Positions 21,549 through 52,202 of a stretch of 64,000 bases of DNA are shown here, one piece after another. The DNA is from Bugula neritina (taxonomy: Eukaryota; Animalia; Bryozoa). The translations under genes and the position numbers were made by a program. Within the stretch, counting starts at the first letter, position 1; each line of letters opens with the position of its first letter. The notes under the pieces are model-generated. The model searched no databases, was not told where the DNA came from, and saw only the letters and a program-made list of their open reading frames with translations. The stretch is taken from assembly GCA_964035545.1 (NCBI GenBank), contig OZ037767.1, positions 16,672,581 through 16,736,580 on the forward strand, in the 5' to 3' direction.

Positions 21549-21570
21549 ATTCATATGAACTTTGTTGAAG

Positions 21571-24189: not shown

Positions 24190-26222
24190 AGTATTCCCCA
24201 CCCTCATTACTACGTGGTCTAATTTGGCTGTTTTCATTAGAAATTTTAAACTAATACACTTGGTATTAGTTATATGATGTAACAGACCACAATTATATAG
24301 TGACAACTCACACACAGTCATTGAGCGAAATAGATATACGTTATTACATACAAAACTGATTGAACTATGTTAATACCACTTACATATTATTAAAGTTCTT
24401 TGCAAACTTAGCCATGTTACCTATATATTTGGGTGGATCTGTAATTCCAATACTCAAAGATTATCAATATATTATTTTCTCTGATGAGTTCCTTTTTTAA
24501 ACAATGAAATAGCAAATCACTTGGGAGTGTTTTTCAAATTATTCGAAAATACTGAGCTGTGATTCGCTAAAAATTATGCAATGGTTTCGCTTGATTTTTA
24601 ATGTTTTGAGTTTTAGCGACCTATAGGGTTATATATTGATACATTTTCCATTCCGTTGCAACTAAATATAGTCTATATTGCATGGTCTGTAGATGCAACT
24701 GAGTGTTTTATGAGCATACCATATGTTTATATAATACTTCATATCACAAAACTTCTTGTTATTGAATTAGAAAAAAAATGTTATTTTTCTGCAAGCTATA
24801 GAAATTGGTTATAATCTTCTTATTGACTTCACCACATGTTTAGTGCTGAGTAATTGCTGACGGTTGTTTGGTGTCAGAATTGAGACTGTTTCATTGATTA
24901 CTGCAGTGACTTTATGCAATAAATATACTTACCACTGTAAAACATGTCTATGTCTATTGTAATCAAAGCTATAGTTATATATATTCTACATTAGGTGACA
25001 CTATTGTGTAGAGGAATTCAGTATGTGTTGAATATAATTGAGAATGAGTCATATAAACATCAGTTCACGCATAATAATATTGAAAAATAACTGCCCCCCC
25101 CTCACCTAGGATTCGAACCCCAGATCTCCAGGTTGCAAGTAGGTTTCTGAATCATGAGAAGGAATTGAGGTAGCAGCGGGAGGTAGAGGGTTTGGGGTTA
25201 AGACAAGGTGGTAGGGTGGAGTGAGTATAAGCTATGACAAAATATAAATAATGTTGACACAAACTGAATCTTATCCTTAGCCATGACCCAAATAAATACA
25301 GTGTAACTAATTTGTTTGTATTAGCCAGGTTTTGAGGCTAGTAGATCAAAGAAATTTATTAGATTATTTCATAAACAGAGAATTACTAGAAAAATAGCAT
25401 TTATACATTTCAGTTGGTAAAATCAGAAAAATGCTACACGGACTGTAAATGATGATATTATCGTATTAGTATTGTCTATATAGCTGTAAATATGTAATTG
25501 TTTCAAATAATTATAATAATACTATGTAGTCTATTAGTTCTATTATATTGAGCTTTATTTAAATATTTAGTTAAAGTTGTGTTGCTTGTATGAGAAACTT
25601 TACATTTCTATTTATATACTGTACGTGCTAATATGGAAAGTATATATTATATATTATAACAACAATAAATATATTTTATTATTCAAAACTGATAATATTA
25701 TCTTAATATTATTACATTATTAAAGTTCCCAGAAAACTTAGCCATGTTATCTACATATCTGTGTTATAGATCTGTAATTCCAATACTCAAAGGTTATCAA
25801 TATGTTATTTTCTCTTACGATTTTTTTTTCAAAATAACAGAATGTCACATTAACTGGGATTGTATTTAAAAATGTAGATAGATTGACTGAACTTTGATTG
25901 GCTAGAAGTTCTAAACTTTTTACAATGACTCTCACTAAAATAACAAGCGGATTGAGTGTTAGAGATTGACTAATTAGGGGGTATAGCATTGATGTAATTA
26001 TAATAAAATAACTATATTTTTTTACCAGTTATAAAACACATCATTATAAAACTTTTTACTATAGCTGTACTACTATTTACATTTAGCAAAAACATGGAGT
26101 CGATGTATTTTGCAATATGGACATAGTTTTTAGAACAAAATAAAGTAGTATCTCGCTTCCCCTTTTCAATCCATGTGTTGATACTATATAGTGTTGTATT
26201 GTTTTAGTTCAACATATAAACA

Positions 26223-26298
26223 TATAAAACAGATGACTCAGTTACATCTAACAGTTACTCTCACTTTCATCAGAGTGTACAACTTGAACATGGTAAGT
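26223..26298 (+). promoter_or_regulatory. TATA promoter and ATG-only first exon of copy 5
   Basis: TATAAAA at 26223 and ATG|gtaagt at 26290. Confidence 0.75.
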
Positions 26299-28586
26299 TC
26301 CCGGTATATTCTAGTGTATTCCAACTATTTTATTCATATATCATTTTTTTATTTTCCTCAATGCAAATAAATGACGATTTATTTTAAATTTCAAATAGGG
26401 AATTTTTTTTTACAAATTATAGCAATAATAATTTATTCAAATTTGCTAGTTTTGAGTAAACATTGTTTAATAAAATATTTTACTTTGCTATAAAGTATGT
26501 TTTTGGGATCTGAATAATTTAAAAAAAAGTACAAGTATTAATGTAAATAGGTTAGAGTATTAGTATATTATTGCTCAGTATTTAGCCTACAGCTATAATT
26601 CAATTTATTCAATTTATACTCGTATAAACTTTGTTGAAGGAAGAAGAAAAGAAGAGCTCAAGGACATCAGAGACACACAGAGGTGTTCACGGAATATCTT
26701 TGGTGTTCTTTATTATAAATCTTCTCCTGTGGTTTTCCTTACTGCTCTACGGTGTATTTGAAGTATCAAACTTGTACAGAGAAGTTGATAGTCTTACAGC
26801 TGCTACTAGAGAGAAACCGTCTGCTGCGACCTTGACACAAACTGAACAGGAAATAGAAGAGATAAAAAAGATACACAGAGAAAGTGAAAGAGAAAGAAAG
26901 AATTTAGAGAAAAAAGTTGAAGTGTTGGAAGAAAAGTTGCTTTTAGTTGACAACCAAAATGATAAATTTGAGAGATTCTGGAAGGAGATGGTAGAAACGG
27001 TGATGTCTATAAAATATGTTGTTTATATACAGATATTTACTAAATTCAGATAGTTAATAAATATAACAGAGAATGTACATAATTCTATGTTAGTACTCAC
27101 TTGAAGATGTCATTACAAAGCAATCTATTCCCTTGCTTACAGGTGCGGTTTTATAAGAATAAAGAAAGAAATGACTGGATATTTCCAGCCAAAACGTCTG
27201 ACTTCACTACATCTGAGCCCACAAGTACATCTGAACCTACACCAGAGAAGGGTAGTTCAGCCAATAGAAACAGGTATAAGAGAGAAGAAGGAGGCCCCAC
27301 CGTTTTACTCCACACTTTATTCAAGGATATGGTAAATTCCTTGGGCTATGATGAAACAGACCTGCCTTCACCTGAGCAAATTGCTGAACTTCTAGGTAAA
27401 GTATATAATAATCATTAAATAATCATTTACTCGAAAATCAAATAAATATATTCTTAATGCTTTATTCAAGATTTTCACCATTTATTATTTTATTCTGTTC
27501 TGTAGCTTGTAGACAAGGACCAAAAGGTGAAAACGGACTTAACGGAAAAGATGGACATCCTGGAGTTGACGGTGCAACTGGGGAGAAAGGAGAACCCGGC
27601 ATTATGGGGGTTAAAGGAATGTCAGGAGAGAAAGGAGAAAGTGGACTTCCTGGTGTTGATGGCAGAATTGGTAGTAAAGGAGAACCTGGTGCTGATGGAG
27701 AAGCTGGTATGCCTGGAACAAAAGGTGAAAAGGGAATCCCTGGAAATCATGGAGAAAAAGGAACTTCCGGCAGAAATGGAGAAAAAGGTTTGCCTGGAAT
27801 GAATGGGCTCCCCGGAGCAGATGGCATAGCTGGCGACAAAGGAGAACCTGGTATTTCTGGCTCAGCCGGCATCCCAGGACTAAAGGGTGATAGAGGAATA
27901 CCTGGAGAAAATGGAAGAAATGGAGCACCTGGTAACACTGGTGTTAAAGGAGAGCCTGGTCAACCTGGAGCTCAGGGAGACAAGGGAATGATTGGTCAAA
28001 AGGGATCGAAAGGAATACAAGGGCAGACAGGAATAAGAGGAGTGACTGGTTTGAAAGGAGATTCTGGTAGAGCTGGCAGTCCAGGAGTCAGAGGTGCAAA
28101 AGGTGATTGATTACCTTTGATAGTAACCATGATGCTTTGCTTTTAATTATACTTTTATTTACCTAAGTGTTATTTATACAGCATATTGTATGATATAGTA
28201 AGATATATTACATAATATATAATAATCCTTCAATAGTATGCATACTATCAAAGTTGAATTTAGCCAATTGATGAGTGGAAATAATTTGATGCTGCATAAG
28301 TTTAAGCGTCAAACTATAATCAATATGGATAATTTAAAAGTAATTGAAAAATAAATGTATTATTTTGTACCACTCACAGACTTTTCCATCGCTGATGTTT
28401 ATAGGAAAGTAGTCTTTATCAAAATACATGCATACTTCTGCAGGTGACAGAGGAGTAAGAGGTCTAACTGGTGCTAGAGGAGCTCAGGGTGCCACTGGAA
28501 GAAAGGGAGACAAAGGAGCCGTTGGAAGTAGCGGAGGAGACAGAAGGGGAGGAGACAGAAGGAGAGGAGATAGAAGGAGAGGATAA
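26290..28586 (+). CDS. Copy 5: complete lectin-less type II transmembrane collagen with RYKR stalk site and RGD tail
   Basis: Exons 26290-26292 (ATG), 26640-26999, 27143-27395, 27506-28102, 28444-28586. Open frame ending GSSGGDRRGGDRRRGDRRRG*. TATA box at 26223. Confidence 0.85.
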
Positions 28587-30267
28587 AGTATTCCCCACCC
28601 TCATTACTACGTGGCCTAATTTGGCTGTTTTCATTAGAAATTTTAAACTGATACACTTAGTATTAGTTACATGATGTAATAGACCACAATTATATGGTAA
28701 CAACTCACACACAGTCATTGAGCGAAATAGATATACAAAACTGATTGAACTATGTTAATACCACTTACATATTATTAAAGTTCCTAGTAAACTTAGCCAT
28801 GTTATCTATATATATGGGCAGATCTGTAATTCCCATATACTCAAAGATTATCAATATATTATTTTCTCAGTATATCTATTATCCTATACCACTATAGAAG
28901 TCGTAGAGAACTTCGGGTCAATCAGTGGTAATGGGCTTTGTATTGAGTTATATAGAAATGGTCATCAATGTTCGCCTAACGAGGCGCAATCGTTATGAGT
29001 AATTGATTGGCTGTAGCTACAGCCAGTTTAATTTCATTGGCTAGGTGATGATTATAGCAATTAGAACAAGTGGTGGATAAAGTTAGGGGTGATATCAATA
29101 CAGATATTCTTAGCAGTAACTGTATTTTGAAAAAATATTTTCTTCCAAAATATTTCAAAAGCTATGAGTTATGAATAAAAATTAACAAAATTTATCACTT
29201 TTGAATGAAAAATCTTAATAGATGCAGGTCTGACTTTTTGATATAAATCCACTCCTTTTAGACTTTGTTCTAGAGAAAGGCTCATATCACTGTATCTATT
29301 GGATAGGAACTTGGTCTTATAGTTTTACTTGAAGCATAATTGTCTTCTCACTCTATTTCAATTCATATATGTTTATAACTCCTTGAATCTATCTGCATGA
29401 TTAAAACATAATTGTCTTCTCATTAAATAATAGTTTTGCAGACTGAATGCCACCATAATTCATACACTCTTGTAAAAAATTAAAATGTTATAACAGTTTT
29501 TGGTTTATTAATATAAACTCTCAAACTCTTTTATATAAAAAAACAATTTTCAAGCTGATGAGAGAAAATATAATTTTAAGAAATATATATGTATAAATAA
29601 TTTTTGGCATATGAATAAATGTAAAACAATATTGCATATGGAAAGCTTTATAATGCCCAAAATTGAATTTCAATAGTAATTTATTTGCTTGTAAACATTA
29701 ATTCTTTTCTTGTTTTACTATACTTTTACCAGTTGTACAGGCACATGTAACCATTCTATTTCACACCTATAGATGCACATATAAATTATTACGTAGAATT
29801 TAGAAAATGAGCAAATGGCACAGATGAAAATTGAGTCGACCTATAATTTTTGACATTTTAGTAAATATCTGTAACCCATTGAAATACAACACTATAGTAA
29901 AATTTGTTTCACATTTGAGTTAAAATCTTGCATTCATGCATGCTATTTAAAATATATGAATATAATTTAATATTTTTGATTAGTGGTAACTATACATGTG
30001 CAGCATTTTTTGCTATGCTATGCAATTTATTATCACATACCATTTATTTGCAATAAAATAACTTATAACACTTTTTTATTATATAGAATATTATTTTTTA
30101 GCCTGCACTTGCATAACAAACTCTTGTGACTATGTCGCCATGCCATACGCCATGCATATAAACTAACACAATTCATGGCACATATCGATCTCAGTATGTG
30201 CCATGTTGTGTTCTTGCACAGACATCCACACGCATGCGTGAACATAAACATGAGCAAGCATATATTA

Positions 30268-33200
30268 TACTTCTCTATTGCTCTTATAAAAATTACAGCT
30301 TATTCAATTGTTGAAATATTTACAGTTAATAATTAAAGGGGCGAGCCCACCATCTGTTGTTTAGCCTCAGCATCACAACTCTATAAAGGCTGCTAATTCA
30401 CTAAATACCATTTAGAGAATTAGCTGCCCCTATAATAGAGTTGTAATATGCTGAGGCTAAACAACATTTGCAAAGATTTAACTTAAAATACATGTTGGCA
30501 ACCACATACAAGTATTGGCAGATACAAAAAAAAACATTGAGCAACATATGCTTTTAGGAGTTGCATTATCAACTTCTTCCTCAGCATCATTAAAAATATA
30601 TCATTGAAAGAAGACAATTTTGGCTTTGTGTTTTCTATATGTTTATTATTGTTATAGGTCCTTATAGATACACGCGCACACACACGTCTATATACATATA
30701 TATAATATATTAATAAATAATCTAATACAATATAAGCATGATTTATTATTTTTAAAACTTTTTTCCTTGAACTGCTATAGATGCATTTTTTGACTGATGG
30801 TTACTGCAATTTCAAAGTTAACAGATAAAGCATGTTCGAGTATTCTAGTGTTCTAGTATAATATACTAGAACATATACATGAACATATTATGTTCATGTT
30901 GAAACGTAGCAAAAGAGTTTATGTTTTCACAAGAATTTATATGAGCAACGTAAACTAGAACTTATTAGGCAAGCTCAGTTTTATTATTTATATAGTTACT
31001 GCATGCACCTAAATGGTGACAATTAGAATATAATATATATTCAAAGCATGAAATTATCTCAACTGGCCATTCAATCCTTTTTATTGCAGTTTGTATATGA
31101 ATTTTAACAGCATTCTAGCTCAAAGCTTATGTTGATCAATTTAATTCACAGTTAGTTTGAGGTCGTGCTTTTCAGTTTCTGGCTGTTTGCCAGGTGCTTT
31201 ACGTTCTATATGAACAATGTTCCACTGATACTCTATATTCCAACCTGCTGCCTAGCTAGTTCTATTTTCTTATCATAATCTTTGATGTAATTACAGAATT
31301 GGTGTGATACATTTTTTTGGCAACCATCAGAGTTATTAAATACAGTAATGGTACCTATAATAATATATTATTATCATTATAATATATTATAATATAGTAT
31401 CATGTGTTTTTTATCATATTGCGCATAATATATATTTTATTATTGTTGTTGCGCAAACAAGTGCAATTAACCTAGTTTTTAAAATGTACCTCTAAATTAT
31501 CAGAATATTAGTTTAAATATTTTCATAGTTTGTTAGGTAAACCTAAAAAAAGAGGCTGTATTCCCAAAGTAAAGGGTGTTGAAATATGAACTATATTAGA
31601 TTAGCCACTCTGCTACCAAGTGCATCAGTATATAATATATGGCTAGCTGTAATGCTTTGTCTCCTGTGGCTGGCTGTGATCTGTTAACTTGGCCAACTTC
31701 CAAGAGTTTAAAATTGGCGCAATTATTCAAGAGGTTAGTTATATACACACTGCAGAGAGCCAGCACGTGGTCATACTAACCTTGCTATTATCAGTACTTA
31801 TTATATACAACTGCCAGTTGGGGTAGGCTACCAACACCAAATTTTGCTCCATAATATACCTTAAACACAATGCAGCAACATAATTTTTAGTTTCAAATTA
31901 CAATGCCACCCTTACAGGAGCTGTGGGCTTCATAAACATTCATATGATTAGAGAGTTATGCTATAGGCCCTATAACTGTGCTAGTCTATGAAGAAAAAAC
32001 ACACCATTGTCAAAGTTTACTTCAAGTATGTTGTTTTCCAAAAACTCAGTTTTGTCCATCACTCTTTTGCATACAAATACTTATGTAATAACATACAGTT
32101 CAAGTTTTATTTTGGAGCACATCTGCAAACTCTACAATAATAGGCAAGAGCATGCTTTACCAGTCTATTTCAGACCTGTTTTTGTAGCTAGTAATATGCA
32201 AGCTATACTTATTTTTTAACTTTTGGGTTATTTGTTCAAAACCATTAGCTTTGCTAGTAACCCGAGACTATTGCAACAGTTTATGAAAATAGCTAGCCAC
32301 TGCTATAGTCAACATTAATTGACAGCCTAATAATTAAAACCCATATTTTGAGGCTCCAAATATTTATGTAATGATAGTTTCTAATATAGTGCTCATACTA
32401 TTCATGATGGCTGTGTGGTCCAGAGGTTAAAGGCGCCAGTGATGTGTTTGTTGGTGGTGGTTCAACCCTACTCTGTGGCAAATTTTTTTGTCAACTTATG
32501 CAAATCCTACTCATGCATAATAAATATGGCTATTTTGAAATATTATTATTCAACAGGAGGACAACATACATGCATACTAATTAGTTACTGAACACTGCAT
32601 GGGCTAAACCTTAAATTGATTTTATGGAATACAATGTACATAAATGAATTATATGTGAGTTAGAGAAACTGAAAGTGCACCTGCTGCACTATAGACAGAC
32701 CTTTACTGACAAGACTGCAAAGTGAAGTGAGGTGATTTAGCTGAAATTAACTCTGCCAAACAAACGAAGAACTATGTTTTGCTGAGGCATTTTCAACAGA
32801 TTGTAACATGGTGAGAAGATGCAACTAACTGCTAATGTAAAATAGGGTACATTACATTGGCAGATATCCAATATATTGCCAATTTGTGCGAGAGGGTACT
32901 ATATGTTATTGTGATAGCGCACAGAGCAGCAAACGTACTAGGAACGTTATAATTAGTCACAGGAGCGTAACTAGAACCACTATATGAAGAATTTAGATAA
33001 TTGCAGTGAAACTTGAAAAATGGTGTACGTTTTGACCAAATTGTGAAGAGCATAAACATAATTTCGAAAAACAAAGAAAGATATTAGAGAAAACATATCA
33101 AGGAATGTCAAGTTTGAATTTCATCATTAAAATAGGAATTAGATATCATATTATGTGCAAACTTTCATAATTGTAAGCTGATCACTGTAGCACTTCGAGT

Positions 33201-33964
33201 ATTCATGACTTTCATCATTCCAAAGCCATCCACTATAGCAAATTTATGTTCTGAAACCTACTAGCAGTTGCTGGCATGGGCTACTTGTTTGTGTTACTCA
33301 AGTGATAAGAGCATTGTGTGAACTAATTAACAGCTATGTGCAATTCCTATTCAGATTTTATTACCAACACTTGTTGCTGCTATTATCATTTGCGGTTGCT
33401 TCATTAAATAGGTTGTCTGGAAATTCACTTATTACTAGTAAGTATGTACATGCTATAACTGGGAGAACTAGTATATCTTCATACAGCAATTATATTATGG
33501 CTGGCCAAGCATTGATCAACCTTTATCAACAGCTCCTCAATTTCTGCAAGTGCACATCAAAATGTACATCACAAATCAATGTTTTATAAACTAAAATGTC
33601 AAAGCACATTAGCGTCAGAGTTCATGCTGCAGTGGGTTACCAACATGTAAACTGGGCAAGTGGCTGAGCCAGCAGTTTATAATATCAGTATATTCATTAT
33701 GCTTTGAACTATAAAATCTTAGCTAGAACTTTATTATAGCTCTTCGACTTTAAAAAATTCAAGCTGCATATATTAAACTAAGATATGGTCATACCAGTTA
33801 TGTAAACATAAACTAGAATAACCTGGTATTCAGTGAATTAGCAGCCTCTATAGAGTTATGATGCTGAGGCTAAACAACGGATGATGGGCTCACCCCTTTA
33901 ATTATTAACTGTAAATATTTCAACAATTAAAAGCTGTAATTTTTATAAGAGCAATAGAGAAGTA
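30268..33964. mobile_element. 3.7-kb segment bounded by ~140-bp inverted repeats (possible nested TIR element)
   Basis: 30268-30410 is the reverse complement of 33824-33964; flanked by TTA on both sides (or TA, if the ends are drawn 2 bp inward). Confidence 0.55.
32408..32485 (+). repeat. tRNA-derived SINE head
   Basis: A box-like TGGTCCAGAGG and B box-like GGTTCAACCC; no complete cloverleaf. Confidence 0.5.
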
Positions 33965-35758
33965 TTAAATAAGACAATCAGCATGAATCTCACAAATCCT
34001 TTATTCAGTGACTGAGAATAATTTGTATAATAATTATTTGCTGTGAAAGATTCAAGCACTTAGAATGCTTAGGTTCAAAGTTAGTGTCATTTCCTGAGGC
34101 AAGTGAAGTGATATGAAAATTGAGAAAAACATGTATTATACAGGTTATAAACTTAGCAAGAAAAGTTATGTTATTGCGATAATTAGGAAAATTAAAGACC
34201 TTAGTCTATCTCAATTTCTCCACTAATGCATCTACATATCAGCCGATTTCTTCACCACTTATCAGGAGCAAACTGGGAGGCAGACCAAGATATCTACAAT
34301 AATAAAAATAACATGGGGAATTAAGAATTTATATGTACAGCTTTTCTGAAACAACTTGTTTCTATACCAGAAATCGATTGACAATGACCATTAAAGCAGT
34401 AATTAGTGAAACTGAAAAACCTCAAAACAAAAATTTCATAAAAAACATAACACTTGTGGTAGAACTATGAGTACTAGTAGATGAGACTACAACAAAACTT
34501 TACTTTTTAGCACAATGGCTGGTATTTTATGTAATGAATCTGCAAAAGCAAATATCCAAATTATTGTATGAGCTATGTACAATGAAGGGAGAGTAGACAG
34601 TCTTCTATGTAGGCAGTAAGTTGGGGGTTAATGGGGTTGACCAGCAGTGAGGAACACCTTGAATGGCAATAAAGACTGTAGGTCAGAGCATATTGATAGG
34701 TTGTAAACATAAATTTACATCAGAGGTTACTTGCTGCAACATAATGACAACGTAATATGAACCTGGTTTTTACCACTATTGTGAATTTGTCAATGCACTA
34801 ACTTGAGTGGATGTTTACATGATCTAAATGCAGAATTGCACTAAATAACCCCTAGAAATGATCTGGTACGTTCCTGGTAAACCTAACAAATAAATATTTA
34901 GACATGACATTCCTAAAATGTTGCAAATTGGAGTTTTGAAGTCAATCTCAAATCCTAAAACACCAAAAATGCAACACCTAATAAAACGCTTACAGAAAGC
35001 GAAAATAATGTATATAATTGGCTGCTTGTGACACATTATTAAAAGAATAATTCATTTCCAAATGCTAATTTACATTTTCAATGGGGTTATATAGGTGATT
35101 TCAGACCTGTACTAAAAAGTCTATCACAGCAGCATATTGTTAAACTGGAGCAGATGTGAAAAAACTAAGTATTTTCACTAAATATGATTGATGTTATACA
35201 CTAAGTTACCAAGCATTGCATTTCCAAATTGATTTTTCATTAAAATATGTTTGGAAAGATGAGACCCCAACCATAAGTAAATGCAAACCACAAGCACAAG
35301 TCCATATGTATGAGCATCCATTCCCATAATGCAAAATCAAAATGGAATGATAGTAAGTTTAAAACCTTGCACCATTATCATGTAGCCAGTTTACCTGAAC
35401 TGGTGTAGAAAACCCTTGTGCTAACCTCTTCTATGCTATAATTCAAATATCGGAGCTCTTAGTTTTCCTGGTGAAAGATGGATCGGGCAACTTTCCTTCA
35501 ACACTAAAAAGAAATAATAGTACATGAGAATATTATACACTAACCATTAAAATGACAATCAAAAATACCAAATATGAATTATGAAGTTTTGGGAAAATAC
35601 AAACAAGATCAGCCAACATTAAATATGAATTAGCCACCTTTAGGGTCAAAACAATTATCAACAACCTATGAAGCCCTTTATCAAACTATAAACAATGAAC
35701 CAATGGCTGCCAGGTCTGCTTTCTACATTGAAACAGATTTTTAAGTTTCTGGCAATAT

Positions 35759-35882
35759 GACCAACAAGTTTTGCAGAGTCTGAGATGGTTAGGCCAAGTG
35801 TACAGAATGGGAAATAGTTGGTGACCAAGACAGCTGCTTTACTCTCAATTGAAAGATGAAGAAAGAAATAGGGGAGGCCTAG
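35759..35882 (+). mobile_element. RTE-clade LINE fragment
   Basis: Translates LRWLGQVYRMGNSW*PRQLLYSQLKDEERNRG, resembling the RTE C-terminal LRWxGHVxRM...P+QLLY motif. Confidence 0.6.
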
Positions 35883-36538
35883 AGAGAGGGGGGGGAGGCA
35901 GAGAGAGACCTAGCAATATCAAAATTAGCTATACATGCCGAGTCTCTGCCACTTGCTACTGTAGCATTTTAACGATATTGCGTACCATTATAATAATTTA
36001 CTACTATTTTTGTAAAGTTATTTGATGCAAAATTAACAAGTGACTAAAAATAATACATGAAACATAACATGATACATTTACAGCATTGAACTCAAATAAT
36101 TCAAAACCTACACTGAATAATTGTTCAACTAACATCACATGAAAATATGTGTCTATTCCTACATATGTTCAGCTGGTTTTAATGCATGGTTGCCTCTTCA
36201 GCATTACATCAGAGAGCAGCATTTTGCGATAGCCTCTGGAATAGTTAATCGGAATTTAAACTTAGTGAACACAAAACAATAGATTACGTACTACAATGGT
36301 GCTCACTACAGATTAGACATCTGCTCAAGTAGATACTGGAGATTTTAGGTTTTTCATAGCATTTAACACCTACCCACACTTTCTGAGCTTCAAATTTGTA
36401 CAACATTATTTTGTTTTCCTCTAGTTTCATAGTTCTTTTGATAGTCTATTAGTGGTTAGCAAACAGACTAAAAAGAAATGATCTTCATTTCCAATGGTCT
36501 AAAATATAATACAAATAGATATAAATTTCATTACAAGG

Positions 36539-36615
36539 AGCAGCTGTGGCCTAGGGTTTAGAAATCTGGTTTAGTAAGCCAGTAGTCATGGGTTCACTGC
36601 CCAGTAAAAGCCATC
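36539..36615 (+). repeat. tRNA-derived SINE head
   Basis: GTGGCCTAGGGTTTAG ... GGGTTCACTGCCC; degenerate A and B boxes. Confidence 0.45.
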
Positions 36616-39600
36616 TTTGATGTTAAGCATCCACATCCAGTAAAACTGTGCAGGGGAGTAATAAATTATGCTAACTTCTTTTAGCATGCAAATTTACGAT
36701 TATAAAAAGCTTATAAATGAATGCTACATTTTAACAGTGAACAAATAGTAAATGAACAAATGTGTTCGAAAGCATTAAAAACTAATAAAATTAACCCTGC
36801 CATCCAATACTGCCAAGAACTTTAGACTAGAGAACAAGCGTTTCATGCTTAAAGTTGGAGAATGATGCTGTAAGGTGCTGATGTGTAACAAATAACTGAA
36901 GGTCACGAATACTTTTCCTTGGGGAGTTAGTGGCCACAGCCTGAGTTTAGGAAAATTTTCACTCACTTGAACACGTGTCCATGAGCATAGCTCACAATAA
37001 GGAGAATCACCGTTTCAGTGCGCCCTAGAAAAAAGATAGTGTCAATATATGAAATTGTGAGAAGCAAATTATAACAATAGCTAAATAAGGCAAAAATGTT
37101 AAGAAATTATATGTATACTCTAGAAGTTATCATGTAACAGATAAATGCATAATTGACAACTGATTGAATAAACATAGATGACCAATAATTTCACTTCACT
37201 TAAATATAATATAAAATACTAGCGATTATTTGAAACACAAATGACCCAAATATTTTTTAGAATTTGATTGGACAATTTGAATAATTTACCATTGATTATA
37301 GAGATGACTTTGAGGGTGTAAGCTACAAATTTTTTAACCATTGTATTGTTACACAATTGGCAAGTTGATGGGAGTAGAGACAGCCTTTCACCTAAAACAT
37401 AGATTACAAGCTAAAACAGTGTTTTAGCTTAAAACAACACATTATAAATTGTTGGGTATAAAAAATGCAAAATAATAGTAACAACACCTAAAATTGGTGA
37501 TGGCTGGTTAATTAAAATAAAAGTTACTAAAAATTACCTACTAATCAAGAGTTTCCTAGTTCCCATGCCAGTAATTGTATTCCTATGAAGAATTGATCGG
37601 ATTTTGTCCCATTTAACTGAGGTAGCCTCTATATACATTGGTGCTCTTTGAGGCTGTCGGGCATACTGCTCAAGGAGTTCTAACAATTGTTGAACATCTG
37701 AAAACATAAACAGCCTTAAATTGTAGTAAAAAAGTTAGCATATATATAGGTGTCTGACAGTATTTTGAAAGTGAGATAAAGAAGTTGTATGTACAATTCA
37801 TTACATTCTATGAGCCATAAATACATGAATATTATCAGGTGCTTATTGGCTGTAAAAAGCCTAATTTGGACTTAATATTATTTATTCGTGTTTTTACAAG
37901 TTGATTAGGTGGCTAAAATACAAAATTAGGTAGGAAACTTTACGTTCACGCAATAATTTTTCATTTTCGCCATTTACAGTACTACAACATTTAGGATCAT
38001 TGTGTGATGGTTATGTTTATCAAAATCTAAAATGAACATATCAAAATTGTGCAGCAAAAATTGTGCCAGTACAAAAACAACATTTATGTATTCACCAGAA
38101 CTTTTCTTTAGAATAGATGTAAAAATAACCTGTCAATTGCTCTGAGGCAGCTTTTTTCAACTCATCACTTATATTTTCAGCTTGGTCTAACAGGTTTGTG
38201 ACAATTCTAAAAGATTGAACAAATTCAATATTGTGTATGGAGAAAACTGATTAAAAACCAAGCTACAAAACTCATCATAGTTAGTATAACATGCACTTAC
38301 TTTCTTGACGCCTTTTCAATCATCGTTTTTCAAGTTGCAAATTGTTTCAGTACCATTTTTGATTTTATCTTCCTCGATACCTTTTTCTGCCAAAGCCTCA
38401 AGTTGGGATAAACAGACTGAATAGCTTTATTCATCGTTATCCATGGTCTATAAATCATTTTAAACAAATATTTTCAACTTGTTAATGGTTATGCATATAT
38501 TTTTATATTTTGAGAATGACCATTATGAACATCTTATTTTCAACTATGACTAGGACACTCATAGTAATAGTGAACCCTAATTATCTATACACCAATATTG
38601 TTCACTACATTCTTAACAGTTAAATACATATAATAATATTCAGAAACATAATATACCCCGTGTTAATTAGCTATATGCAATTTCACCAGCTCCAGGCTAG
38701 GATCCCAATTCATTGCAAAACTTCTTTTTATTACTATTGCGTCGATTATAAGTGAGTAAATACTTATAGTTATACTCATAGTGTTTTCATCAAGAATGAA
38801 CCTAAATTGTAGTTAGTTAGTCACTCACACTGGGTAACTTTTAAATTTATTGCATTATGATTATAATTATTGGAACAGAAAACAACGAAGTTCCAAATTG
38901 AAAGAGAAAGAATCAGTACTGTAAGTGATTATAACTAAATATAAGTTAACGGACTGAGACTACCATTAGATTTTTCTTAGTAAACAAACGCATAATCAAT
39001 TAATAATGAAATATAACTTGATACCAACTCATAGTCATAGGGCGTAGTGATAGTCATAAAAATTATCTATTACAGCATTAGATTAGACTTACTCTTACTA
39101 CCTACTGGTAATACTAATTGAGTAATCAGTAATAGTAATAACTAACTATTAAGGTATTAGACATCAGAACTACTAGTAGGTCTACTAGTACTACTACTAG
39201 TAACTAGAGTACTACTACTACTACTAGTACTACTGTACTACTACTACTACTACTAGTACTACTACGTCTACTGTACTAGTAGTAATAATAATTTATATCA
39301 AAAATGAGCACATTGTTTTACTAATAATATTATCAACCTAATAGCAATAGTACCAACCTGATTCGTAATGGGTTTTCTTGAAGAATGGAACTAGATTGTA
39401 ATTACTAACATGTGTATACTGTACATACTAAATTAGTCTCTAATAATATATTATTATGAAACTTATGATTATCGCCCCATTTGCGGAGCAGTTAGGCCGA
39501 ATTTATTATGAACACAAGAGGCGAGTAAGCTTGCGCAGATAAATTACTGGCCACTATGATAGACTAGACCTGTTTTGACCGAATATCGGTTTTACTTGAA

Positions 39601-42309
39601 CCTCGCCCCAAGGTCCAATGCCTAATCGGAGTCCGCTGCTCCTTTGATCAAATGACCCAAAGATCCAATTTAAATTAGGAATACCATAGGCGTACTCAAA
39701 CTTATAGGCTAGGGCATATGCATGGTTATTATTGAAAAATAGATTAATAATTATTAGTAATACTACTACTAATAGTAATACTAATACGAATGCACTAATG
39801 GTAATAGTTATAATGTCACGATTAGACATTACATTTGCTCTTACTCTTAGTTAATGTTATACTTATAATAATAATAATCATATTTATAAATATGAATATC
39901 ACTCTCTCTCTGACTCTCACTCTAAGTCTAAGTCTATCAGTATCACTATCAGTATCACTGCCAGTATAGCTATAACTATTACTATAAGTATCACTCAATC
40001 AGTTTCATTATGACTATGATAAAATCATAAAATGATAAATAATTCACTGATAGTCATAGTGATAACAGTTACTGATTAGAGTGATATTAAATTAGTAATC
40101 AGCATAAATGTGGGTATAACTATCACTGTAGTACTCTTAATCATAATCATAATGATTATGATAATCATAATGGTAGTGATATGAGTATCACTATCAGTAT
40201 GGGACCAACTAATACTAATAGTAATACTGTAAAGTGTAATACTAATACTAATAGTGATAGTATCAAATCGAAATTGATCAATAGTAAATATAGTTATACT
40301 TAAACTTAAAGACTTATACTTATAGTAGTAATACTAATAGTAATAGTTATGCTTATAGTATTAGAACCTTATACTATGTCTATAGTCTATGACGGTATGA
40401 CATACCCATAAATGGTGATGTCTAAGTCCTACTTTAAAGTAGCAGTTAAACTTAAAGTTTGATATTCTACTCTGTATAACTGAGACTGAGTATCATACAC
40501 CTTACATGTCATGCTGAGTATCATTATGATTATCACTTTAGGTTTATGAGTATCACTTTCAGTAAGATACTCATACTGTGACTATGAGTTATACTTATAG
40601 TCATACCCCGATACCCATACTTCTACTACTAGTGATCTACTCCTACTCCTAGTTCTACGGGCAAGGCTACTCACTCATATTCATAGTCATAGTAATTGAT
40701 AGTGGTGTAACCTAAACTAATACAATAACCAATGCCAAAAGACAAGGTAAAGCTAAAATTAAAAGTAGAAACCTAAGGGTCATAAATCATATATGTAATG
40801 GTGTTTTAGTTTATGTTTGTTTATGCTCATTTTATGTTTATGCTACCAAGTACCAACTCATCAGTCACTTAGTTTTATAGTGATAATTATACTTATACTT
40901 ATAGCCTACGCCCTATAGCTTATTTAATTTTGACTCTACCTTGCCCTTTGGCATTGATTTAGTTTTGATTAAATTGTTATATTTAATGTTTTTCATGAAC
41001 TTTATGAAGTTTTATTGATAAGTTATCATATAGTAATACTAATAGTAATAGTGATAATTGTATCATAATGATGATATTGATATATAAAATATTATGACCA
41101 TCAATGTATCACTGTGAATGTAATAATTTTTATATAAGTAAATTAATTTACTATTAAATAAAACTTGTGCAAGTTTATAGTTGGCATCCCTGTGAGAAAC
41201 CCCTGATGGGAAAGGTTTTTTTGTTAAATGGGGCTAAGGAATTATTTATTTGGAGCATAGGAGCAATTATGACTGGATGCTTTTCCTAACAAATGGCAGT
41301 AATGAAAAATTGAATATGATTGTTATCTAATCATTATGTGAGGTTAACCTTTATGTTAGGAATCTCAATAGCACGAGCATACAATTCAATCATCGCCATG
41401 TTGGCTGTGATTTTCTTAATCATACTTATTAAGTTTGCAGTTTTTGATATTTGATGGATATAGTATTCATAATAATAGTCACTTAAATTTGATGGTAATA
41501 TTGATCAATAAATTTCAAGTACACTGACTAAATCTAATGACTACTGGTAATGAAACTAACGACACTCAAACTGATTTGCCTCAAGACTGAACTATGTTTT
41601 CTAAGTGATGACAGACTAAGATTAAGTTTAATAATAGGGCAGTAGTACATTTAACTAGAAGTATAAGCTAAAGTATACAACCATAAGTGAGTAACCATGA
41701 TGTTATCTCGACCAACGCAATCTCAATACTAATACCTGATTTATTGAGAATGTTACTATATATTTGAGTATGAGTATGTAACTGTATCAATATGATGAAA
41801 CTTATACAGTTATGCACATAGTGCTAGTGAAAGTATCTCAAACCGTTGCAAAATCCAACTTTATTCAAAACTTTGCTACAAATACTTGAGTTTTAATTTT
41901 AAGGTTGATCATAAAGGGTTAAAATTATTGTGAATAAATTTATTTTAACTGTTCATTTTGCTTCAAAATTATCTTTTAATTCAATGAAGTTTTAATGAAT
42001 ATTAATTTATTTATATTTCAACAAGTCACTGTTTTAATTAATATAGGTATAAGTTTAGGTATCTAATAACTTTAACCATCATTACATTCATCATTTTTAA
42101 TTTTTATGCCAATTGCTAAATTATAATACCCATACTGATATCACCACTATTGAATTATTTTTCTCATTCACCTATGTTTGTAATACGGTTATTGCTTGTT
42201 AGTTAGTAGCATATATAACAACTATAGTAATAGCTATAACTACAAGCATATTTAATATGCTAAGGTATATTGAGAGATTGTCATAAATATCTCAGTGATC
42301 ATATGCATG

Positions 42310-42870
42310 ACACCCTTAGCATTCATGTCTTGAACATCTAGCCATGGATCCCTTTATATTGTTTTCAGTGTTGAATGCCCATCCTGCATGAATGCTTTGC
42401 CTTCATTTGGGAGGTGGTAAATTGATTGGATTTTATGTAAAATTCCTTAAGCTCTTGTTTCAGGACATCCTCAAACCTTAGATATAAGTTCTTCTAGCTG
42501 GATGAGTTCCTTTTGATATTAATGCATGCAATCGAGTGCGGTGGATGAGATACTTTGGCATGTTGACCAGCCCAGTGAAGACAGAAGAAATTCAGTTTTG
42601 ACGATGGAGAATCCGGGTCTGTGATTTCAAATACATCTTCATTTACCATTTTATCTTCCCAGATTTTACTCAACATGCATTTTAAACTCCAGGTATGAAA
42701 AGTGCTGAGCTTTGATTCTTGCAGTCCACATGTTGCCCATTTTTTTCATCCACAAGGAAGAATGCTGAGAACACAAAATGCGTAGACTTTTCTATTGGCG
42801 TGAATATTAGGGTGTTTGTCCATATTTGCTAGTTCACAAAGCGGAATTATTTTGGTATTTGTCATATCCT
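42310..42870 (-). mobile_element. Degenerate RTE-clade LINE 3' region
   Basis: Minus-strand remnants IWEDKMVNEDVF, LHWAG and RFEDVLKQELK, with frameshifts. Confidence 0.6.
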
Positions 42871-44689
42871 GCAGAGCCCATTTAAATGTTTGAGCAGAAA
42901 AAGTAAAAATAAATATTTTGCAGTGTGTTTACTGTTTTGATGATGGTTTTAGGGAAACATCTAGATTTACCATTCATGTACTTGTGACAGGCCTGTGTTT
43001 CAGCGATTATAGGAGAGTATAATTTTTCTTTAATAGAAATTGAGTCATGCAAGGGAAGCTGGTTTCCTTACTTTATTAAGCAAAATTTGCTATCACAACA
43101 ACAGAAGTGTTGCTAGCCTTGATTTGGAAACATTTTATATTTATAACTCTGAAGCTTATTTTGAGACATTTGGCTGCTTGTTGGATAGATTGCATAGCAT
43201 CTTTACTTGCACTAATACTTAGAAGCATTTACTTGGTTTTCCTATAGTTTTATTTTGAATGTTTTTATGATATATTGCAGAACTGTGGGTTCATTCTACT
43301 TGTAAGTATATTCCATAGGTCTAACTCAAACCCTGTGAATTTTCAAGTTACTATGGCAAGCTATGATGAAAGAAATGCTAAACTGGACAGGTAATAGAAA
43401 AGAAAGTCCGATAATTTTTTTAATTGCAATTTAAATTACTTAGCTTGCATTACTCAGCAGTATGGTAGCAGTGGTAGAACCAGCAGCAGTAGTAGATCAT
43501 AGTATAGTAGTATTGATAAAATGATTGATAGATTAGAACTGTAATTTTGAATATTAAAAATATGACAATGCCACTGTGCGCCATAAATTTCTTGTTGGCC
43601 ATTAAAATCAGCCATTAAATCAGTTTTCTTTTGGCTAGAACAAGCACTGCTGCCTGGACATAGTAATATATTATATGTATGGACTGTATGTTAATTATAT
43701 GTAGAGGAATTATTTTTGCTAGCTTTATTAAAAAACCCTGCTTGTTTCTCATATTATTGTATTGTCAGTTTCAGCAATTTCAGGCCAGATAAATTTAAAT
43801 TATACCTTGCAAATTTTAGGCCTGTTCCAGTCTACCTGTCAACACATTTGTTTGATCTAATCTAATTATGATGGCCTTCCAAGCAATGTAGTTAGCAAAA
43901 GTGAGAGAACTAATATTGCTTTTTCAGCCTATATTATGTTTAAAACCAGTAAAATAATAGAAATCATGAAACTAGTAATAGGCAATCCTATAATGCTGTT
44001 TAATAAACTTATTTGCGCTGTTACTTTAGTGATTTCGACGCTGTTTTATAAATTATTAGCAATCTTTCAAAGATGAATAAATATACATTTTCTTTTAGTA
44101 TGTCACCAATTGGAATATTTTGACCTGTATACCTATCTAGTGGAGGTGTTAATTTGTAAACATATTGGTTTTGCCAAGATTATTGATTAAAGCAGTTGCT
44201 GAAAGCCAAAATAAAATGCTAACCAAAGTTCATATCTAGTGGGCTACAATTTGCCAACTTCTATAAAGCATATAATAGCTAGTAATTGTTTCTATGCTGT
44301 ACCACTTGACGGTCTGTTCTCTTTTACCTTACTCTATATTATGCTGTATAAATTCTAGCACACTTATCTGGTTTTTAATCATTTCTTGCACCATATGCCA
44401 ATAATTTTTACGTAGATGCATACAATCGGACAGCTGGATGGCCTGGCCATTGTGGAGAAGCATCATAACCACCTGCTTGGTGTTGGAGCTGAGTGCATAT
44501 CAAGGTGGGTAGCACAACTTCTTAGTTCATAAGTAGCAGCCTAGTTTTTTAAAAGGTTTGACTATATTAAAATATAAACATTTTGTTATTGCACTAATAC
44601 AATGATAAAATGAGCAAACAGTTTCCAATATAACTTGCTGCTGGTAAGATTTACAGTACTTGTAGTAGAAACAATATTAGTAGTGGTGG

Positions 44690-45186
44690 TGGCGGCAGTA
44701 GTGGTAAAAGTAGTAGTAGCAGCAGTACTGGTAGTAGTAGCAGTAGTAGTACTAGTTAGTAGTAGTAGTAGTAGTAGTAGAAGTAGTAGCAGCAGCAGCA
44801 GTAGCAGTAGTAGCAGCAGTAGTAGTAGCAGTAGTAGAAGTAGTAGTAGCAGTAGTAGTAGTAGCAGTAGTAGTAGCAGTAGTAGAAGTAGTAGCAGCAG
44901 CAGTAGCAGTAGTAGTAGCAGTAGTAGAAGTAGTAGCAGCAGCAGCAGCAGCAGCAGTAGCAGTAGTAGCAGCAGTAGTAGTAGTAGTAGCAGTAGTAGA
45001 AGTAGTAGTAGCAGTAGTAGTAGTAGCAGTAGTAGTAGCAGTAGTAGAAGTAGTAGCAGCAGCAGTAGCAGTAGTAGTAGCAGTAGTAGAAGTAGTAGCA
45101 GCAGCAGTAGCAGCAGTAGTAGTAGTAGTAGTAGTAGTAGCAGTAGTAGTAGTAGTAGTAGTAGCAGTAGTAGTAGTAGCAGTAGC

Positions 45187-45223
<37 letters not shown>

Positions 45224-45290
45224 TAGTAGCAGTAGTATAGTAGTAGAAGTAATAATAATAAAATAATAACATTATTAGTAGTAGTGGTGA
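44690..45290. repeat. Compound (AGT/AGC)n trinucleotide microsatellite
   Basis: About 600 bp of agt/agc repeats with periodic aga interruptions. Confidence 0.95.
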
Positions 45291-46890
45291 AGTTGCTTTT
45301 GATTCTGACGTTAGTACTGTTAGTGGTAGAGATGGTGTTGGTAGAAATAGGATTAGTGGTTGTGCACTCATAGTTAAAGGCATAAAGCATAAACCAGAAT
45401 TGAATACATATATAACATAGATATGATATGACTCCTTATTTATATTGATTTACTATCTTGCATGAACATGGCATTTTCGCTATCAACATTAGTGTTTGTA
45501 TTATACACTTTCACTAAACAAGCTTGTTAAATTTATAAAAAATTATGTAGGTGATGACTTTTGCATATCTGTGTTTAATTTTAAAAATATCATGTTGCAT
45601 AATTATTTTTTAGGTGTCTGGTGAGCGGACGACTTCATTTTCGGCTGCTTCATGGCACTTTTATTTTCGGAAAAGATGTAACCACTTGTAAAATCAGTTT
45701 TTTTATGGTGAACTAAACAATATAATGTTTAACAAAATTCTTTTTTGGTTAAAAATAAAGGTATACTGTCTTTGGCTTTCTGTTATTTCTATATTGTGTT
45801 CTTCTGTTGCTATGTGTAATTGATGAGATGACTCCAAACTCTTGCACATCCGCCACAATAAAGTAGATAATTTTGCTATGTGCATCAAGATTTTGTTATA
45901 AGTAGATATAGTTTTGCAATGATAGTGTTGATGCTGCAGCAGGTAACATTCTAGTAGGATAAACCAAACAGAATTTAAGCTAAAACATTCTAAAAAAATA
46001 CAGGATTGCTTGAGCCACCTTACCTTTGCTTTTTTCTAGGCAAAAGTTGTTAGCTAAATAATAAAAAGACAAATTAATGATTTCTGTGAGAGTTGTCTAC
46101 TACAAAAATTACGTAGCAGATCATCATTAGTAACCATAACAACACGTACATGTTTACAGCACTCATGTGCTCTCTTTGTTCTGATTCGTCAACAGTAGCG
46201 CCCTAGACAGTCGATGTTATCGCACGAAAATATATTGTTTATTGCGGCTAATATCGCGAAATGGCAAAATGAGGATCGACCCTGACAGTCGTAAAAGCCG
46301 TGTGATGCACTGTATTTTCTCTGATGAGTTCCTTTTTAAACAATATAATAGCAAATCACTTGGGAGTGTTTTTCAAATTATGCGAAAATACTGAGCTGTG
46401 ATTCGCTAACAACTGTGCAATGGTTTAGCTTGATTTTTTAGAGTTCTGAGTTTTAGTGACCTATAGGGTTACATATTGATACATTTTCCACTCCGTTGCA
46501 ACTAAATATAGTCTATATTGCATGGTCTGTAGACGCAACTGAGTGTTTTAATGAGCATACCATATGTTTATATTTCATATCAGAAAACTTCCTTGTTATT
46601 GAATTAGAAAAAATTGTTATTTTTCTGCAAGCTATAGAAATTGTTTATAATCTTCTTATTGACTTCACCACATGTTTAGTGCTGAGTAATTGCTGATGGT
46701 TGTTTGGTGTCAGCATTGAGACTGTTTCAGTGACTTTATGCAATAAATATACTTACTACTGTAAAACATGTCTATGTCTATTGTAATCAAAGCTCTATAT
46801 AGTTATATAAATTCTATATTATATATTCTATATTATATTATATTCTATATTATATTATATTATATTCTATATTAACACTATTGTGTAGAG

Positions 46891-48581
46891 CAGGGGTGTC
46901 CAACCTTTTCAGACCAAGGGCCAGTCTGCAAGTTTCAACTTGAGCTGGGGGCCACAACATTTTTTTTTGTTTTTAAAATAAATTTTCAAGATTCATTAAA
47001 CATCTGCAGGCCATATGTATTGTAATTATAAGCAAGGGCTAGGCTTTGCATGTTTATTAAAATCATAACATATTTGAATAGATATATATTATTTATGTGT
47101 GTATGTGTGTATATATGCATTTAATTAAAATAGGTAAACAAGAAACATTTCATTTTTATTACTTTCATAATCAATAATTATATATGCATTTATGTTTGTG
47201 CAAAAAAATTATACATATATATTCATACAAAGTATATATTCATGATTGTACATGCAAATTTAAACAAGATGTGCCAGTGCTAAGAGTCTGGACTCATATC
47301 AGTATAGTTATATTTTACAACCATCAGTGAAACACTTGTAAGTACACAGTGAGTACTGTTTGCCTTGAACAATTCTGTTAATATCTGGTTTCGTATCAAA
47401 ACATATAACCCTTAGTTGCTGGACTAAGTGCTGACTAGTGAGTGAAGTGTAGTATTTATTTTGTGTATTTCATTTGACTGAAAATTGAAAGTTCAAAGTT
47501 CAAACCTTCAAGCCATCTCAGTGCAGTGCAGCATCTAACAAGCAGTCAAAGGTCAAAGGTCAAGGCAATCACAAATCCCAAATAATTTCAGTACATACTC
47601 GCACAAAATTCATTATAAAAACAAAATTTTTTAGACATCTAACCTTAAAACAGTATGTAAAGGAAAACTAACATATACATAATAATATTTTAGTACTGCA
47701 TAAGTGAAGTGTGCCAGAGATTCTTCAACTACTTATCTTTCACAATACAGTCAATAAAAGTGAGATCTCAGTTATACTTTCAAAAAAGTCTTGTCTCTAT
47801 ATGGCCTGTCCTGATTAAATGTCTTTGAAATACCTGTCTGCACAGGATAGCTAAGGGCAACTTTTTAGCTGCAACTGCCTTGCTGAGGTTTGCATTGTAA
47901 CTGTGTAAAAATTCAGTACCAGTAAAAACAATCTTATTTAATTGAAGGCTACTAGAATCAAAATTTAAAAACTATGGTGTGAATCTTATTTTTTCTCAGT
48001 GCAGCTTTTTTGGAATTTTTTCATTCTTTTGCAAAGTTATAGAAAAAAACTGCACATTTTTGGCTAATTTTGCCTCAAAAGTTGATTTCTGTAGTACCAG
48101 TAAAATATCTTAGCAGGAAAACATGATATCTGAATAAAAAAGCAATGACTTTTAGATTTTATATAAATTGTGGATTTATACGCGGGAAATGGTATATTTC
48201 TTTTTTAGTAGTAAGCACTGTGCATCACTTCACACTTCAGTGAACGCGTAGAGATGAGCATAATATTATAATATAGGCGTCTACATTACTATAAGTCACA
48301 GGCTTGCTATAGCTAACAGACTATAATGACTATATAGCTTGCTGTTATTAGTTGTAGTTTGATCTCAGGCTAAACAATGACAAGTAGGCAACACACATGC
48401 CACCCACAGAGCAATATTGTAGAAGAACTTAAACTACATTTTAATAGAAATTCTTAGTGGGATGCTTTCAACTATCCTATGTGCTGCTGTTTCAGGCTAG
48501 TTAGCAAATTTGATGTACAAAAATTTGTAACTTGCTATACCTTTGGGGGGCCACACAAATATAGCTGGAGGGCCAAATCCA
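46891..48581 (-). mobile_element. One-ended hAT (Charlie/Buster-like) non-autonomous element, copy 1
   Basis: TIR CAGGGGTGTCCAACC follows gtgtagag (empty site at about 25005 and 51504). Minus-strand transposase C-terminal remnant SLTSQHLVQQLRV...KPDINRIVQGKQ at about 47355-47450. GGGCC subterminal motifs at both ends; distal TIR missing. Confidence 0.75.
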
Positions 48582-49230
48582 GTAAACTTAGCCATGTTAT
48601 CTATATATATGGGCAGATCTGTAATTCCCATACTCAAAGATTATCAATATATTATTTTCTCTGGTGAGTTCCTTTTTAAACAATTAAATAGCAAATCACT
48701 TGGGAGTGTTTTTCAAATTATGCGAAAATACTGAGCTGTGATTCGCTAACAACTGTGCAATGGTTTAGCTTGATTTTTTAGTATTTTGAGTTTTAATGAC
48801 CTATAGGGTTATATATTGATACATTTTCCATTCCGTTGCCACTAAATTTAGTCTATATTACATGGTCTGTAGACGCAACTGAGTGTTTTAATGAGCATAC
48901 CATATGTTTATATTTCATATCAGAAAACTTCTTGTTATTGAATTAGAAAAAAATTGTTATTTTTCTGCAAGCTATAGAAATTGGTTATAATCTTCTTATT
49001 GACTTCACCACATGTTTAGTGCTGAGTAATTGCTGATGGTTGTTTGGTGTCAGCATTGAGACTGTTTCAGTGACTTTATGCAATAAATATACTTACTACT
49101 GTAAAACATGTCTATGTCTATTGTAATCAAAGCTCTATATAGTTATATAAATTCTATATTATATATTCTATATTATATTATATTCTATATTATATTATAT
49201 TATATTCTATATTAACACTATTGTGTAGAG

Positions 49231-50921: not shown

Positions 50922-51593
50922 GTAAACTTAGCCATGTTATCTATATATATGGGCAGATCTGTAATTCCCATACTCAAAGATTATCAATATATTATTTTCT
51001 CTGGTGAGTTCCTTTTTAAACAATTAAATAGCAAATCACTTGGGAGTGTTTTTCAAATTATGCGAAAATACTGAGCTGTGATTCGCTAACAACTGTGCAA
51101 TGGTTTAGCTTGATTTTTTAGTATTTTGAGTTTTAATGACCTATAGGGTTATATATTGATACATTTTCCATTCCGTTGCCACTAAATTTAGTCTATATTA
51201 CATGGTCTGTAGACGCAACTGAGTGTTTTAATGAGCATACCATATGTTTATATTTCATATCAGAAAACTTCTTGTTATTGAATTAGAAAAAAATTGTTAT
51301 TTTTCTGCAAGCTATAGAAATTGGTTATAATCTTCTTATTGACTTCACCACATGTTTAGTGCTGAGTAATTGCTGATGGTTGTTTGGTGTCAGCATTGAG
51401 ACTGTTTCAGTGACTTTATGCAATAAATATACTTACTACTGTAAAACATGTCTATGTCTATTGTAATCAAAGCTCTAGTTACATATATTATATATTAACA
51501 TTATTGTGTAGAGGAATTCAATATGTGCTGAATATAATTGAGAATGAGTCATATAAACATCAGTTCATGCATAATAATATTGAAAAATAATTT

Positions 51594-51670
51594 TCCCTCA
51601 CCCAGGATTCAAACCACAGATCTCCAGGTTGCAAGTAGGTGGGCTAACCAATTACACCACAGAGGCTGCT
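51594..51670 (-). repeat. tRNA-derived SINE head (truncated paralogous copy at about 25098-25145)
   Basis: Reverse complement GCCTCTGTGGTGTAATTGGTTAGC...TTGCAACCTGGAGATCTGTGGTTTGAATCC; the 25.1-kb copy has GGTTCGAATCC. Confidence 0.6.
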
Positions 51671-52124: not shown

Positions 52125-52202
52125 TATAAAACAGACGACTCAGTTACATTTAATAATTTTTCTCTCATTTTGATCAGAGTGTACAACTTGAACATGGTAA
52201 GT
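52125..52202 (+). promoter_or_regulatory. TATA promoter and ATG-only first exon of copy 6
   Basis: TATAAAA at 52125 and ATG|gtaagt at 52194. Confidence 0.7.

Follow-up and report, generated by a model that had tools for sequence, protein, structure and literature searches.

Giant KDZ transposons with nested transposable elements (TEs) and dead transposase genes are already known from algae and fungi. Here, we describe a 17,445-bp insertion in a 64,000-nucleotide stretch of the bryozoan Bugula neritina (contig OZ037767.1, positions 16,672,581 to 16,736,580; hereafter the window, in whose numbering plain positions are given). In our reading—to which we assign a probability of roughly 0.85—the insertion lacks autonomy, has been rearranged internally, and belongs to a young family of giant cut-and-paste KDZ transposons. 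This family comprises two groups of shorter copies, termed subfamilies A and B, and a third group C of longer, transposase-bearing masters; the window copy belongs to A.

The Zisupton/KDZ elements of animals (Bohne et al. 2012, via PMC9297572 and PMC12730594) are the closest described relatives. Their transposases are multi-exonic, reach up to 1,400 amino acids, and are found in marine animals (PMC9297572). The family described here shares with them the multi-exon PF18758 transposase, target-site duplications (TSDs) of 8 bp, recent activity, and the marine metazoan host. Unlike them, the window copy lacks a working transposase, the terminal inverted repeats (TIRs) amount to 7/9 matches over 9 bp, and the elements measure 17–32 kb; in addition, the N-terminal cysteine cluster is of the CxC3 type here and of the CxC4 plus SWIM type in canonical Zisupton (PMC11343200). 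Zisupton and Dileera make 8-bp TSDs and Kyakuja makes 7-bp ones, the latter without detectable TIRs (PMC12730594).

Similar size and nesting are found in the giant KDZ elements of Ectocarpus and Chlamydomonas, which span 10 to about 30 kb and bear unrelated nested TEs that are fixed among copies—hence, transposition continued after these hits—together with accessory genes and often pseudogenised transposases (PMC12477816). The present family is alike in all of these respects. It differs in its host, an animal instead of an alga, and in its mosaic subfamilies with complementary transposase relics, which are N-terminal in A and catalytic in B. The KDZ1–3 and KDZx1 elements of Cryptococcus have likewise been called “gigantic,” and also share with our family the 8-bp TSDs and the extra genes; KDZx1 bears no detectable TIRs (PMC11343200). 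They are, however, fungal, only 6.4–11 kb long, present in few copies, and equipped with CxC1 or CxC4 plus SWIM clusters, and their mobility was shown experimentally, whereas that of the window family is inferred.

The insertion and its empty sites

The insertion splits a spacer that is found intact at four paralogous sites within the window. The left flank stops with ...caatatatTATTTTCT at 28867, and the insert opens with CAGTATATC at 28868; it closes with GATGCACTG at 46312, and the right flank picks up with TATTTTCTctgatgagttcc at 46313. The borders are defined by the following features:

28868..46312, plus strand, 17,445 bp: whole element, read as subfamily A of a KDZ/Zisupton-type family
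28860..28867: left TSD copy, TATTTTCT
46313..46320: right TSD copy, TATTTTCT
24473..24480: paralogous empty site, with others at 48653, 50993, and 12526

The unbroken 20-mer ...CAATATATTATTTTCTCTG(A/G)TGAGTTCC is found without any mismatch at 24473, 48653, and 50993, and a fourth time, with a single mismatch, at 12526, for a chance expectation of 0. In a multiple alignment, both flanks abut on the paralogous empty sites and overlap by 8 bp only. Because of these empty sites and this alignment, we regard the insertion as confirmed, together with the precise position of its borders and the 8-bp TSD. An earlier note on this DNA, made from the sequence without database searches, had described the TSD and the in-window empty sites correctly, and its 7/9 inverted match between the first 9 bp of the two ends is likewise borne out. 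The subterminal motifs that it listed, GGGTCAATC/GATCGACCC and AGTCGTA, do occur in both ends; yet they stay at chance level, as an arithmetic estimate gives about 0.5–0.9 chance matches of this kind for two ends of 100 bp, and a scan of the terminal 500 bp for 8-mers gave no repeated GC-containing subterminal motif.

An empty allele of the insertion site would read ...CAATATATTATTTTCTCTGATGAGTTCC. The stretch is present in one sequencing run (X6) in the form of short contigs, which are uninformative on such an allele; one contig that continues for 9 letters past 28868 with the sequence of an empty site was considered as a candidate and rejected, since a graph path that runs via the paralogs in the window can account for it.

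The transposon family and its KDZ-bearing copies

The first and last 250 bp of the insert each occur about 35–40 times in the 216-Mb source genome. Left and right ends pair on the same strand at a spacing of 17–32 kb, and the homology between copies ends exactly at the CAG and CTG termini. For 24 end pairs, both flanks were read (seven to nine further pairs stand outside this count); 21 of these bear perfect 8-bp TSDs, every one different, with T at the second TSD position in 14. The pairing of both ends at other loci with different TSDs, which had been suggested as a check, is thus found in 21 of 24 cases, and together with the 8-bp TSD of the window copy it supports the earlier description as a giant, non-autonomous, cut-and-paste DNA transposon. 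The copies are spread over eight large contigs (C1–C3 and C5–C9) and two smaller ones (C112 and C143) with unrelated flanks. Comparison of whole copies gives about 33–35 full-length members—roughly 0.6 Mb of the genome for a family of about 35—which fall into three groups:

Group A: about 10–11 copies of 17–20 kb, including the window copy
Group B: about 17–19 copies of 17–18.6 kb
Group C (masters): 5 copies of 26–32 kb with the transposase gene present, namely C8:974067-1000164, C7:12121255-12147360, C8:3598894-3625026, C5:3307951-3340418, and C2:21304383-21332982

Among themselves, the A copies show 99.9% identity, hence their amplification is very recent. Over 17.4 kb, the window copy differs from C8:1850866-1868320 by eight substitutions and from the C6 copy by three, and judged from this divergence it is very young. 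Contig depth in run X6 lies at ~100 for host DNA, at ~1,000 for the A-specific part, and at ~3,500 for the first 130 bp, which fits 10–11 and about 35 copies, respectively; as X6 may be the assembly's own sample, these depths are not independent support. Two A copies bear additional insertions: C143:38635-58714 has gained 2.5 kb holding an inverted copy of a 1.9-kb dispersed repeat (see below), and C6:2324864-2344268, a copy without a clean TSD, has gained 1.16 and 0.79 kb.

The superfamily assignment is carried by the masters. Genome-wide, the KDZ domain PF18758 has ten matches, of which five lie inside exactly the five longest copies, all on the element's minus strand; matches of this lineage are confined to these 26–32 kb copies. 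The transposase was searched exon by exon. In the master C8:974067-1000164, exon-sized frames on the minus strand encode CxC3, a cluster of cysteines that accompanies KDZ transposases (PF18804, E 2.3e-5, 24.6 bits), and three collinear KDZ exons that cover profile positions 55–106, 119–165, and 165–205. The catalytic KDZ exon is 100% identical across all five masters, and the exon-like frames are open and 96–100% identical in the three masters that were compared. A second master gene on the plus strand encodes a double zinc ribbon. For the metagenome relative P0002, the precomputed Pfam record gives CxC3, and an exhaustive protein search with the master's CxC3 exon returned 23 matches, all of them nameless exon-sized fragments of 82–181 amino acids. 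Two marks of the KDZ superfamily are hence present, the KDZ-domain transposase in the masters and the 8-bp TSD in 21 of 24 end pairs. The window copy bears no KDZ domain match, which makes it a non-autonomous member.

Several points weigh against this reading. Just one of the three KDZ exon matches clears the Pfam cut-off alone, and the CxC3 scores of both the master (24.6 bits) and the relic in the window copy (21.4 bits) fall below the curated cut-off of 26.6 bits. The master gene is known from separate exon frames, and its intactness, catalytic residues included, is putative. The cluster is CxC3, as opposed to the canonical CxC4 plus SWIM (PMC11343200), the TIRs are as short as stated above, and at 3 of 24 end pairs no clean TSD is seen. 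The position of the junctions rests on the assembly. Transposition was not observed, and mobilisation in trans is proposed solely on the identity of the ends.

Further KDZ-related sequences were encountered outside the family. At ~75 loci (e.g., C1:33472104, C6:415977, and C8:1217332), a high-copy repeat encodes 46 amino acids that are 43–48% identical to the CxC3 relic of the window copy, nearly always with one in-frame TAG; it probably represents a separate abundant KDZ-derived family. Open frames related to the CxC3 exon lie outside recognised copies at C8:5178281-5178514 (92%), C7:11757582-11757806 (59%), and C7:11695427-11695633 (62%), and possibly are pieces of this KDZ group or further lineages within it. 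The metagenome contig L081 (JGI sample 3300002729) is 94% identical to the transposase region of the master over 8 kb of DNA, and its exon frames match the master at 84–100%, with one overlapping, alternative frame at 70% as the exception. L079 and L080, from metagenomes as well (samples 3300002729 and 3300003318), form a third lineage with the five N-terminal exons only, at 38–73% amino acid identity to the master.

Probable mosaic architecture and rival origins

The window copy is built from two arms that it shares with other subfamilies and the interior between them:

28868..28935, plus strand, 68 bp: left terminus, starting with CAGTATATC, identical to the masters
29518..36711 (element 651–7844): A-specific interior without counterpart in B or C
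30261..30410 and 33824..33971: arms of a 150-bp inverted repeat, ~93% match, in A copies only
31233..33121: nested dispersed repeat of 1.9 kb, of which the genome holds at least 30 more copies at 83–89% identity
36778..37008, minus strand: relic CxC3 exon, PF18804 E 2.3e-4 (21.4 bits), 69% amino acid identity to the master exon
37273..37398, minus strand: relic transposase exon, 50% amino acid identity to the master exon
37528..37710, minus strand: relic transposase exon, 66% amino acid identity to the master exon
38346..38447, minus strand: probable relic first coding exon, 53% amino acid identity to exon 1 of L079
39148..46312, plus strand: right arm common to other subfamilies, from element position 10281
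41166..43003: 1.84 kb of nested debris resembling long and short interspersed nuclear elements (LINE/SINE), shared by 26 A and B copies but found in none of the masters
44697..45251: (AGT)n microsatellite of ~185 units, in all subfamilies, with a length that varies between copies
45238..46312, plus strand, 1,075 bp: right end, ending with GATGCACTG, one difference from master C8:974067-1000164

Past its first 68 bp, the left arm is ~78% identical to the master up to 29517 (element position 650). The right arm is 87–99% identical to B in 250-bp windows; compared with the master, its identity is ~50% at 39148 and climbs to 97–100% from 42989 onward (the last 3.3 kb), and the final 653 bp are identical to C8:974067-1000164. 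Between the arms, element positions 7845–8843 show 70% nucleotide identity to the N-terminal transposase exons of the master. The exon at 38346–38447 has no significant match to exon 1 of the master. The window copy retains no catalytic exon; conversely, in subfamily B three catalytic exons remain at 38–60% identity, and the N-terminal exons are missing. The protein identity of the CxC3 relic in diverged A copies is 92%, next to DNA of ~97% identity, which suggests neutral decay of the relic. It is less likely that the CxC3 exons, with the conserved right arm upstream of them, still give rise to a truncated regulator that binds DNA.

Besides the nested 1.9-kb repeat, the interior at 29518–36711 matches only the ~10–11 A copies. 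The 150-bp inverted repeat encloses 3.4 kb of this interior, the 1.9-kb repeat included, and may represent the ends of an older nested element. The 1.84-kb debris block opens with a high-copy repeat of ~123 bp. Scans of the element for tRNA/SINE and against Rfam found nothing, a Pfam search of 13 further open reading frames (ORFs) of the window copy gave no match besides the CxC3 relic, and the long ORFs of the window copy and of four other copies are low-complexity or microsatellite frames only. The earlier note saw no transposase ORF, which is right for an intact gene, and it overlooked four relic transposase exons; the intron-containing decayed gene that it saw exists and appears to be what is left of the KDZ transposase gene of the element itself, not a host gene. 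The same holds for the material it took for ordinary chromosomal DNA, which is family-specific sequence present in all A copies plus nested dispersed repeats. Judged from these matches, the interior would be the family's own sequence together with old nested repeats that were fixed before amplification, rather than host cargo.

The derivatives Ds (of Ac) and KP (of P) keep the ends of their autonomous elements, lose the catalytic part, and outnumber the master. Such derivatives probably arise via aborted or template-switched gap repair, and are usually much shorter than the master. In contrast, A and B stay at 17–20 kb, and their gene relic appears to derive from another lineage than their ends. 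Since the arms of A are near-identical to those of the masters while its gene relic is only 50–69% identical, a chimeric origin of A is the most likely one, for example through a switch of template in gap repair. More generally, A and B would be mosaics in which arms of the active lineage became attached to relics of a second, divergent KDZ lineage; this would be explained if the repair of excision gaps involved conversion or a change of template, which fits the steady climb in identity toward the right end. The second lineage behind the relics of A and B would, in such an end-swapped mosaic, now be missing. A speculative extension—which we consider rather unlikely—is that dead giant elements, with their N-terminal (A) and catalytic (B) relics at 38–69% amino acid identity, were rescued when their ends were converted into the ends of a living master. 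If true, this would explain why there are about six 17-kb derivatives for every master.

For mobility, it is proposed that the KDZ transposase of the masters binds the common ends in trans and thereby moves A and B, that it cuts at CAG...CTG, and that it integrates its substrate with an 8-bp staggered cut. By this route, the window copy would have inserted very recently into the spacer that follows a gene for a collagen-repeat membrane protein.

Four other origins can be weighed against trans-mobilisation by the masters. The best surviving of them, improbable as it is, holds that A is or was moved by a divergent KDZ transposase of its own (D-type), whose master is unassembled, polymorphic, or just lost. 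The merely 50–69% identity of the relic exons of A to those of the master would agree with this, as would the ~78% identity of the left arm beyond its first 68 bp and the additional relatives of the CxC3 exon at C8:5178281 (92%), C7:11757582, and C7:11695427 (59–62%). However, the A copies, with their mutual identity of 99.9%, have a near-exact right end of 653–1,075 bp in common with the C masters, and the assembly yielded no further locus at which this lineage has KDZ catalytic exons—a D-type master is unlikely because such exons are absent there.

Still less probable is a Pack-type or composite origin, as the earlier note had proposed, in which two distant transposon ends moved a captured host segment with a fragment of a host gene. 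The window copy does resemble Pack-MULE and Pack-type elements as a large non-autonomous element with a non-transposase interior: most of its 17 kb has no recognisable coding capacity, and 7 kb specific to A show no homology to the masters. Yet the interior matches A copies and dispersed repeats, no captured host fragment was found, and among the best 34 of 953 genome candidates scored, none is a donor locus lacking the element ends. The transposase relic is the sole gene-like part, the LINE-like debris is common to B, and the microsatellite is common to B and C. The proposed capture thus fails on the family-specific interior and on the lack of a donor among the candidates scored.

Very improbable, and largely refuted, is a non-autonomous hAT element mobilised by a hAT transposase encoded elsewhere in the genome. 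The termini of hAT elements follow the YARNG rule, with which the left end of the insert (CAGTA) agrees in 4/5 positions and the right end (CAGTG in reverse complement) in 5/5. The CAG...CTG termini, the 8-bp TSDs, and the T favoured at TSD position 2 are hAT-like as well, and intact-looking hAT ORFs are present in the genome. However, the hAT dimerisation domain PF05699 has 14 matches genome-wide, none of them inside any of the ~35 family copies, whereas copies with identical ends carry KDZ transposase exons—in all five of the 26–32 kb class—and the window copy bears KDZ-type CxC3 relics. The hAT assignment of the earlier note was hence abandoned. As KDZ/Zisupton elements make 8-bp TSDs, too (PMC12730594, PMC11343200), TSD length and termini are common to both superfamilies and do not discriminate between them.

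A segmental duplication or an assembly artefact, to which the tandemly duplicated host region might point, is next to impossible, as the copies lie on ten contigs with unrelated flanks, their homology stops exactly at CAG and CTG, and 21 perfect, all-different TSDs rule out segmental duplication.

Host context and significance

The DNA around the insertion holds plus-strand genes in a tandem array, with copies that start at 21562, 26631, and 52745. Each of these genes (21562–28674 and 52745–55941) combines a transmembrane/coiled-coil exon and an acidic one with long exons of collagen repeats (Pfam Collagen, E 1e-36); the collagen exons are duplicated themselves (54477–54857 and 54951–55274). 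No C-type lectin exon was seen in 24300–26650 or 46313–52750. The insertion lies ~190 bp past the last exon-like frame of the second array copy and adjoins the start of a 2,340-bp tandem duplication (46313–48652, 48653–50992, and a partial unit to 51497), whose units are 98.6–100% identical. Each unit holds a 1.44-kb dispersed repeat (e.g., 49226–50664) with at least 40 genome copies at 83–97% identity, and all five masters carry this repeat as a nested insertion, too. The match between tandem unit and master had been considered as a transposon fragment beside the insertion; it was rejected, as it merely reflects this unrelated repeat of at least 40 copies.

Compared with the giant KDZ elements of algae and fungi, the new aspect is a modest one and lies in the mosaic build of the non-autonomous subfamilies. 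On a practical level, a plausible hAT or Pack-type classification is corrected, and a 17-kb “gene-less” insertion is tied to its probable masters. Without this link, such an element resembles ordinary chromosomal DNA with odd pseudogenes, and the link hence helps genome annotators. The clean empty sites, the 21 TSDs, and the minimal common end—68 bp on the left and ~650 bp on the right—are ingredients for a transposition assay.

For the host, the collagen-repeat membrane-protein genes around the insertion form an array that evolves rapidly, and the element is possibly polymorphic there and might be of use as a marker. For the superfamily, these sequences provide an animal case of a young giant KDZ family that is probably still active, and the mosaic structure of its members offers a concrete case for the origin and persistence of giant non-autonomous DNA transposons.

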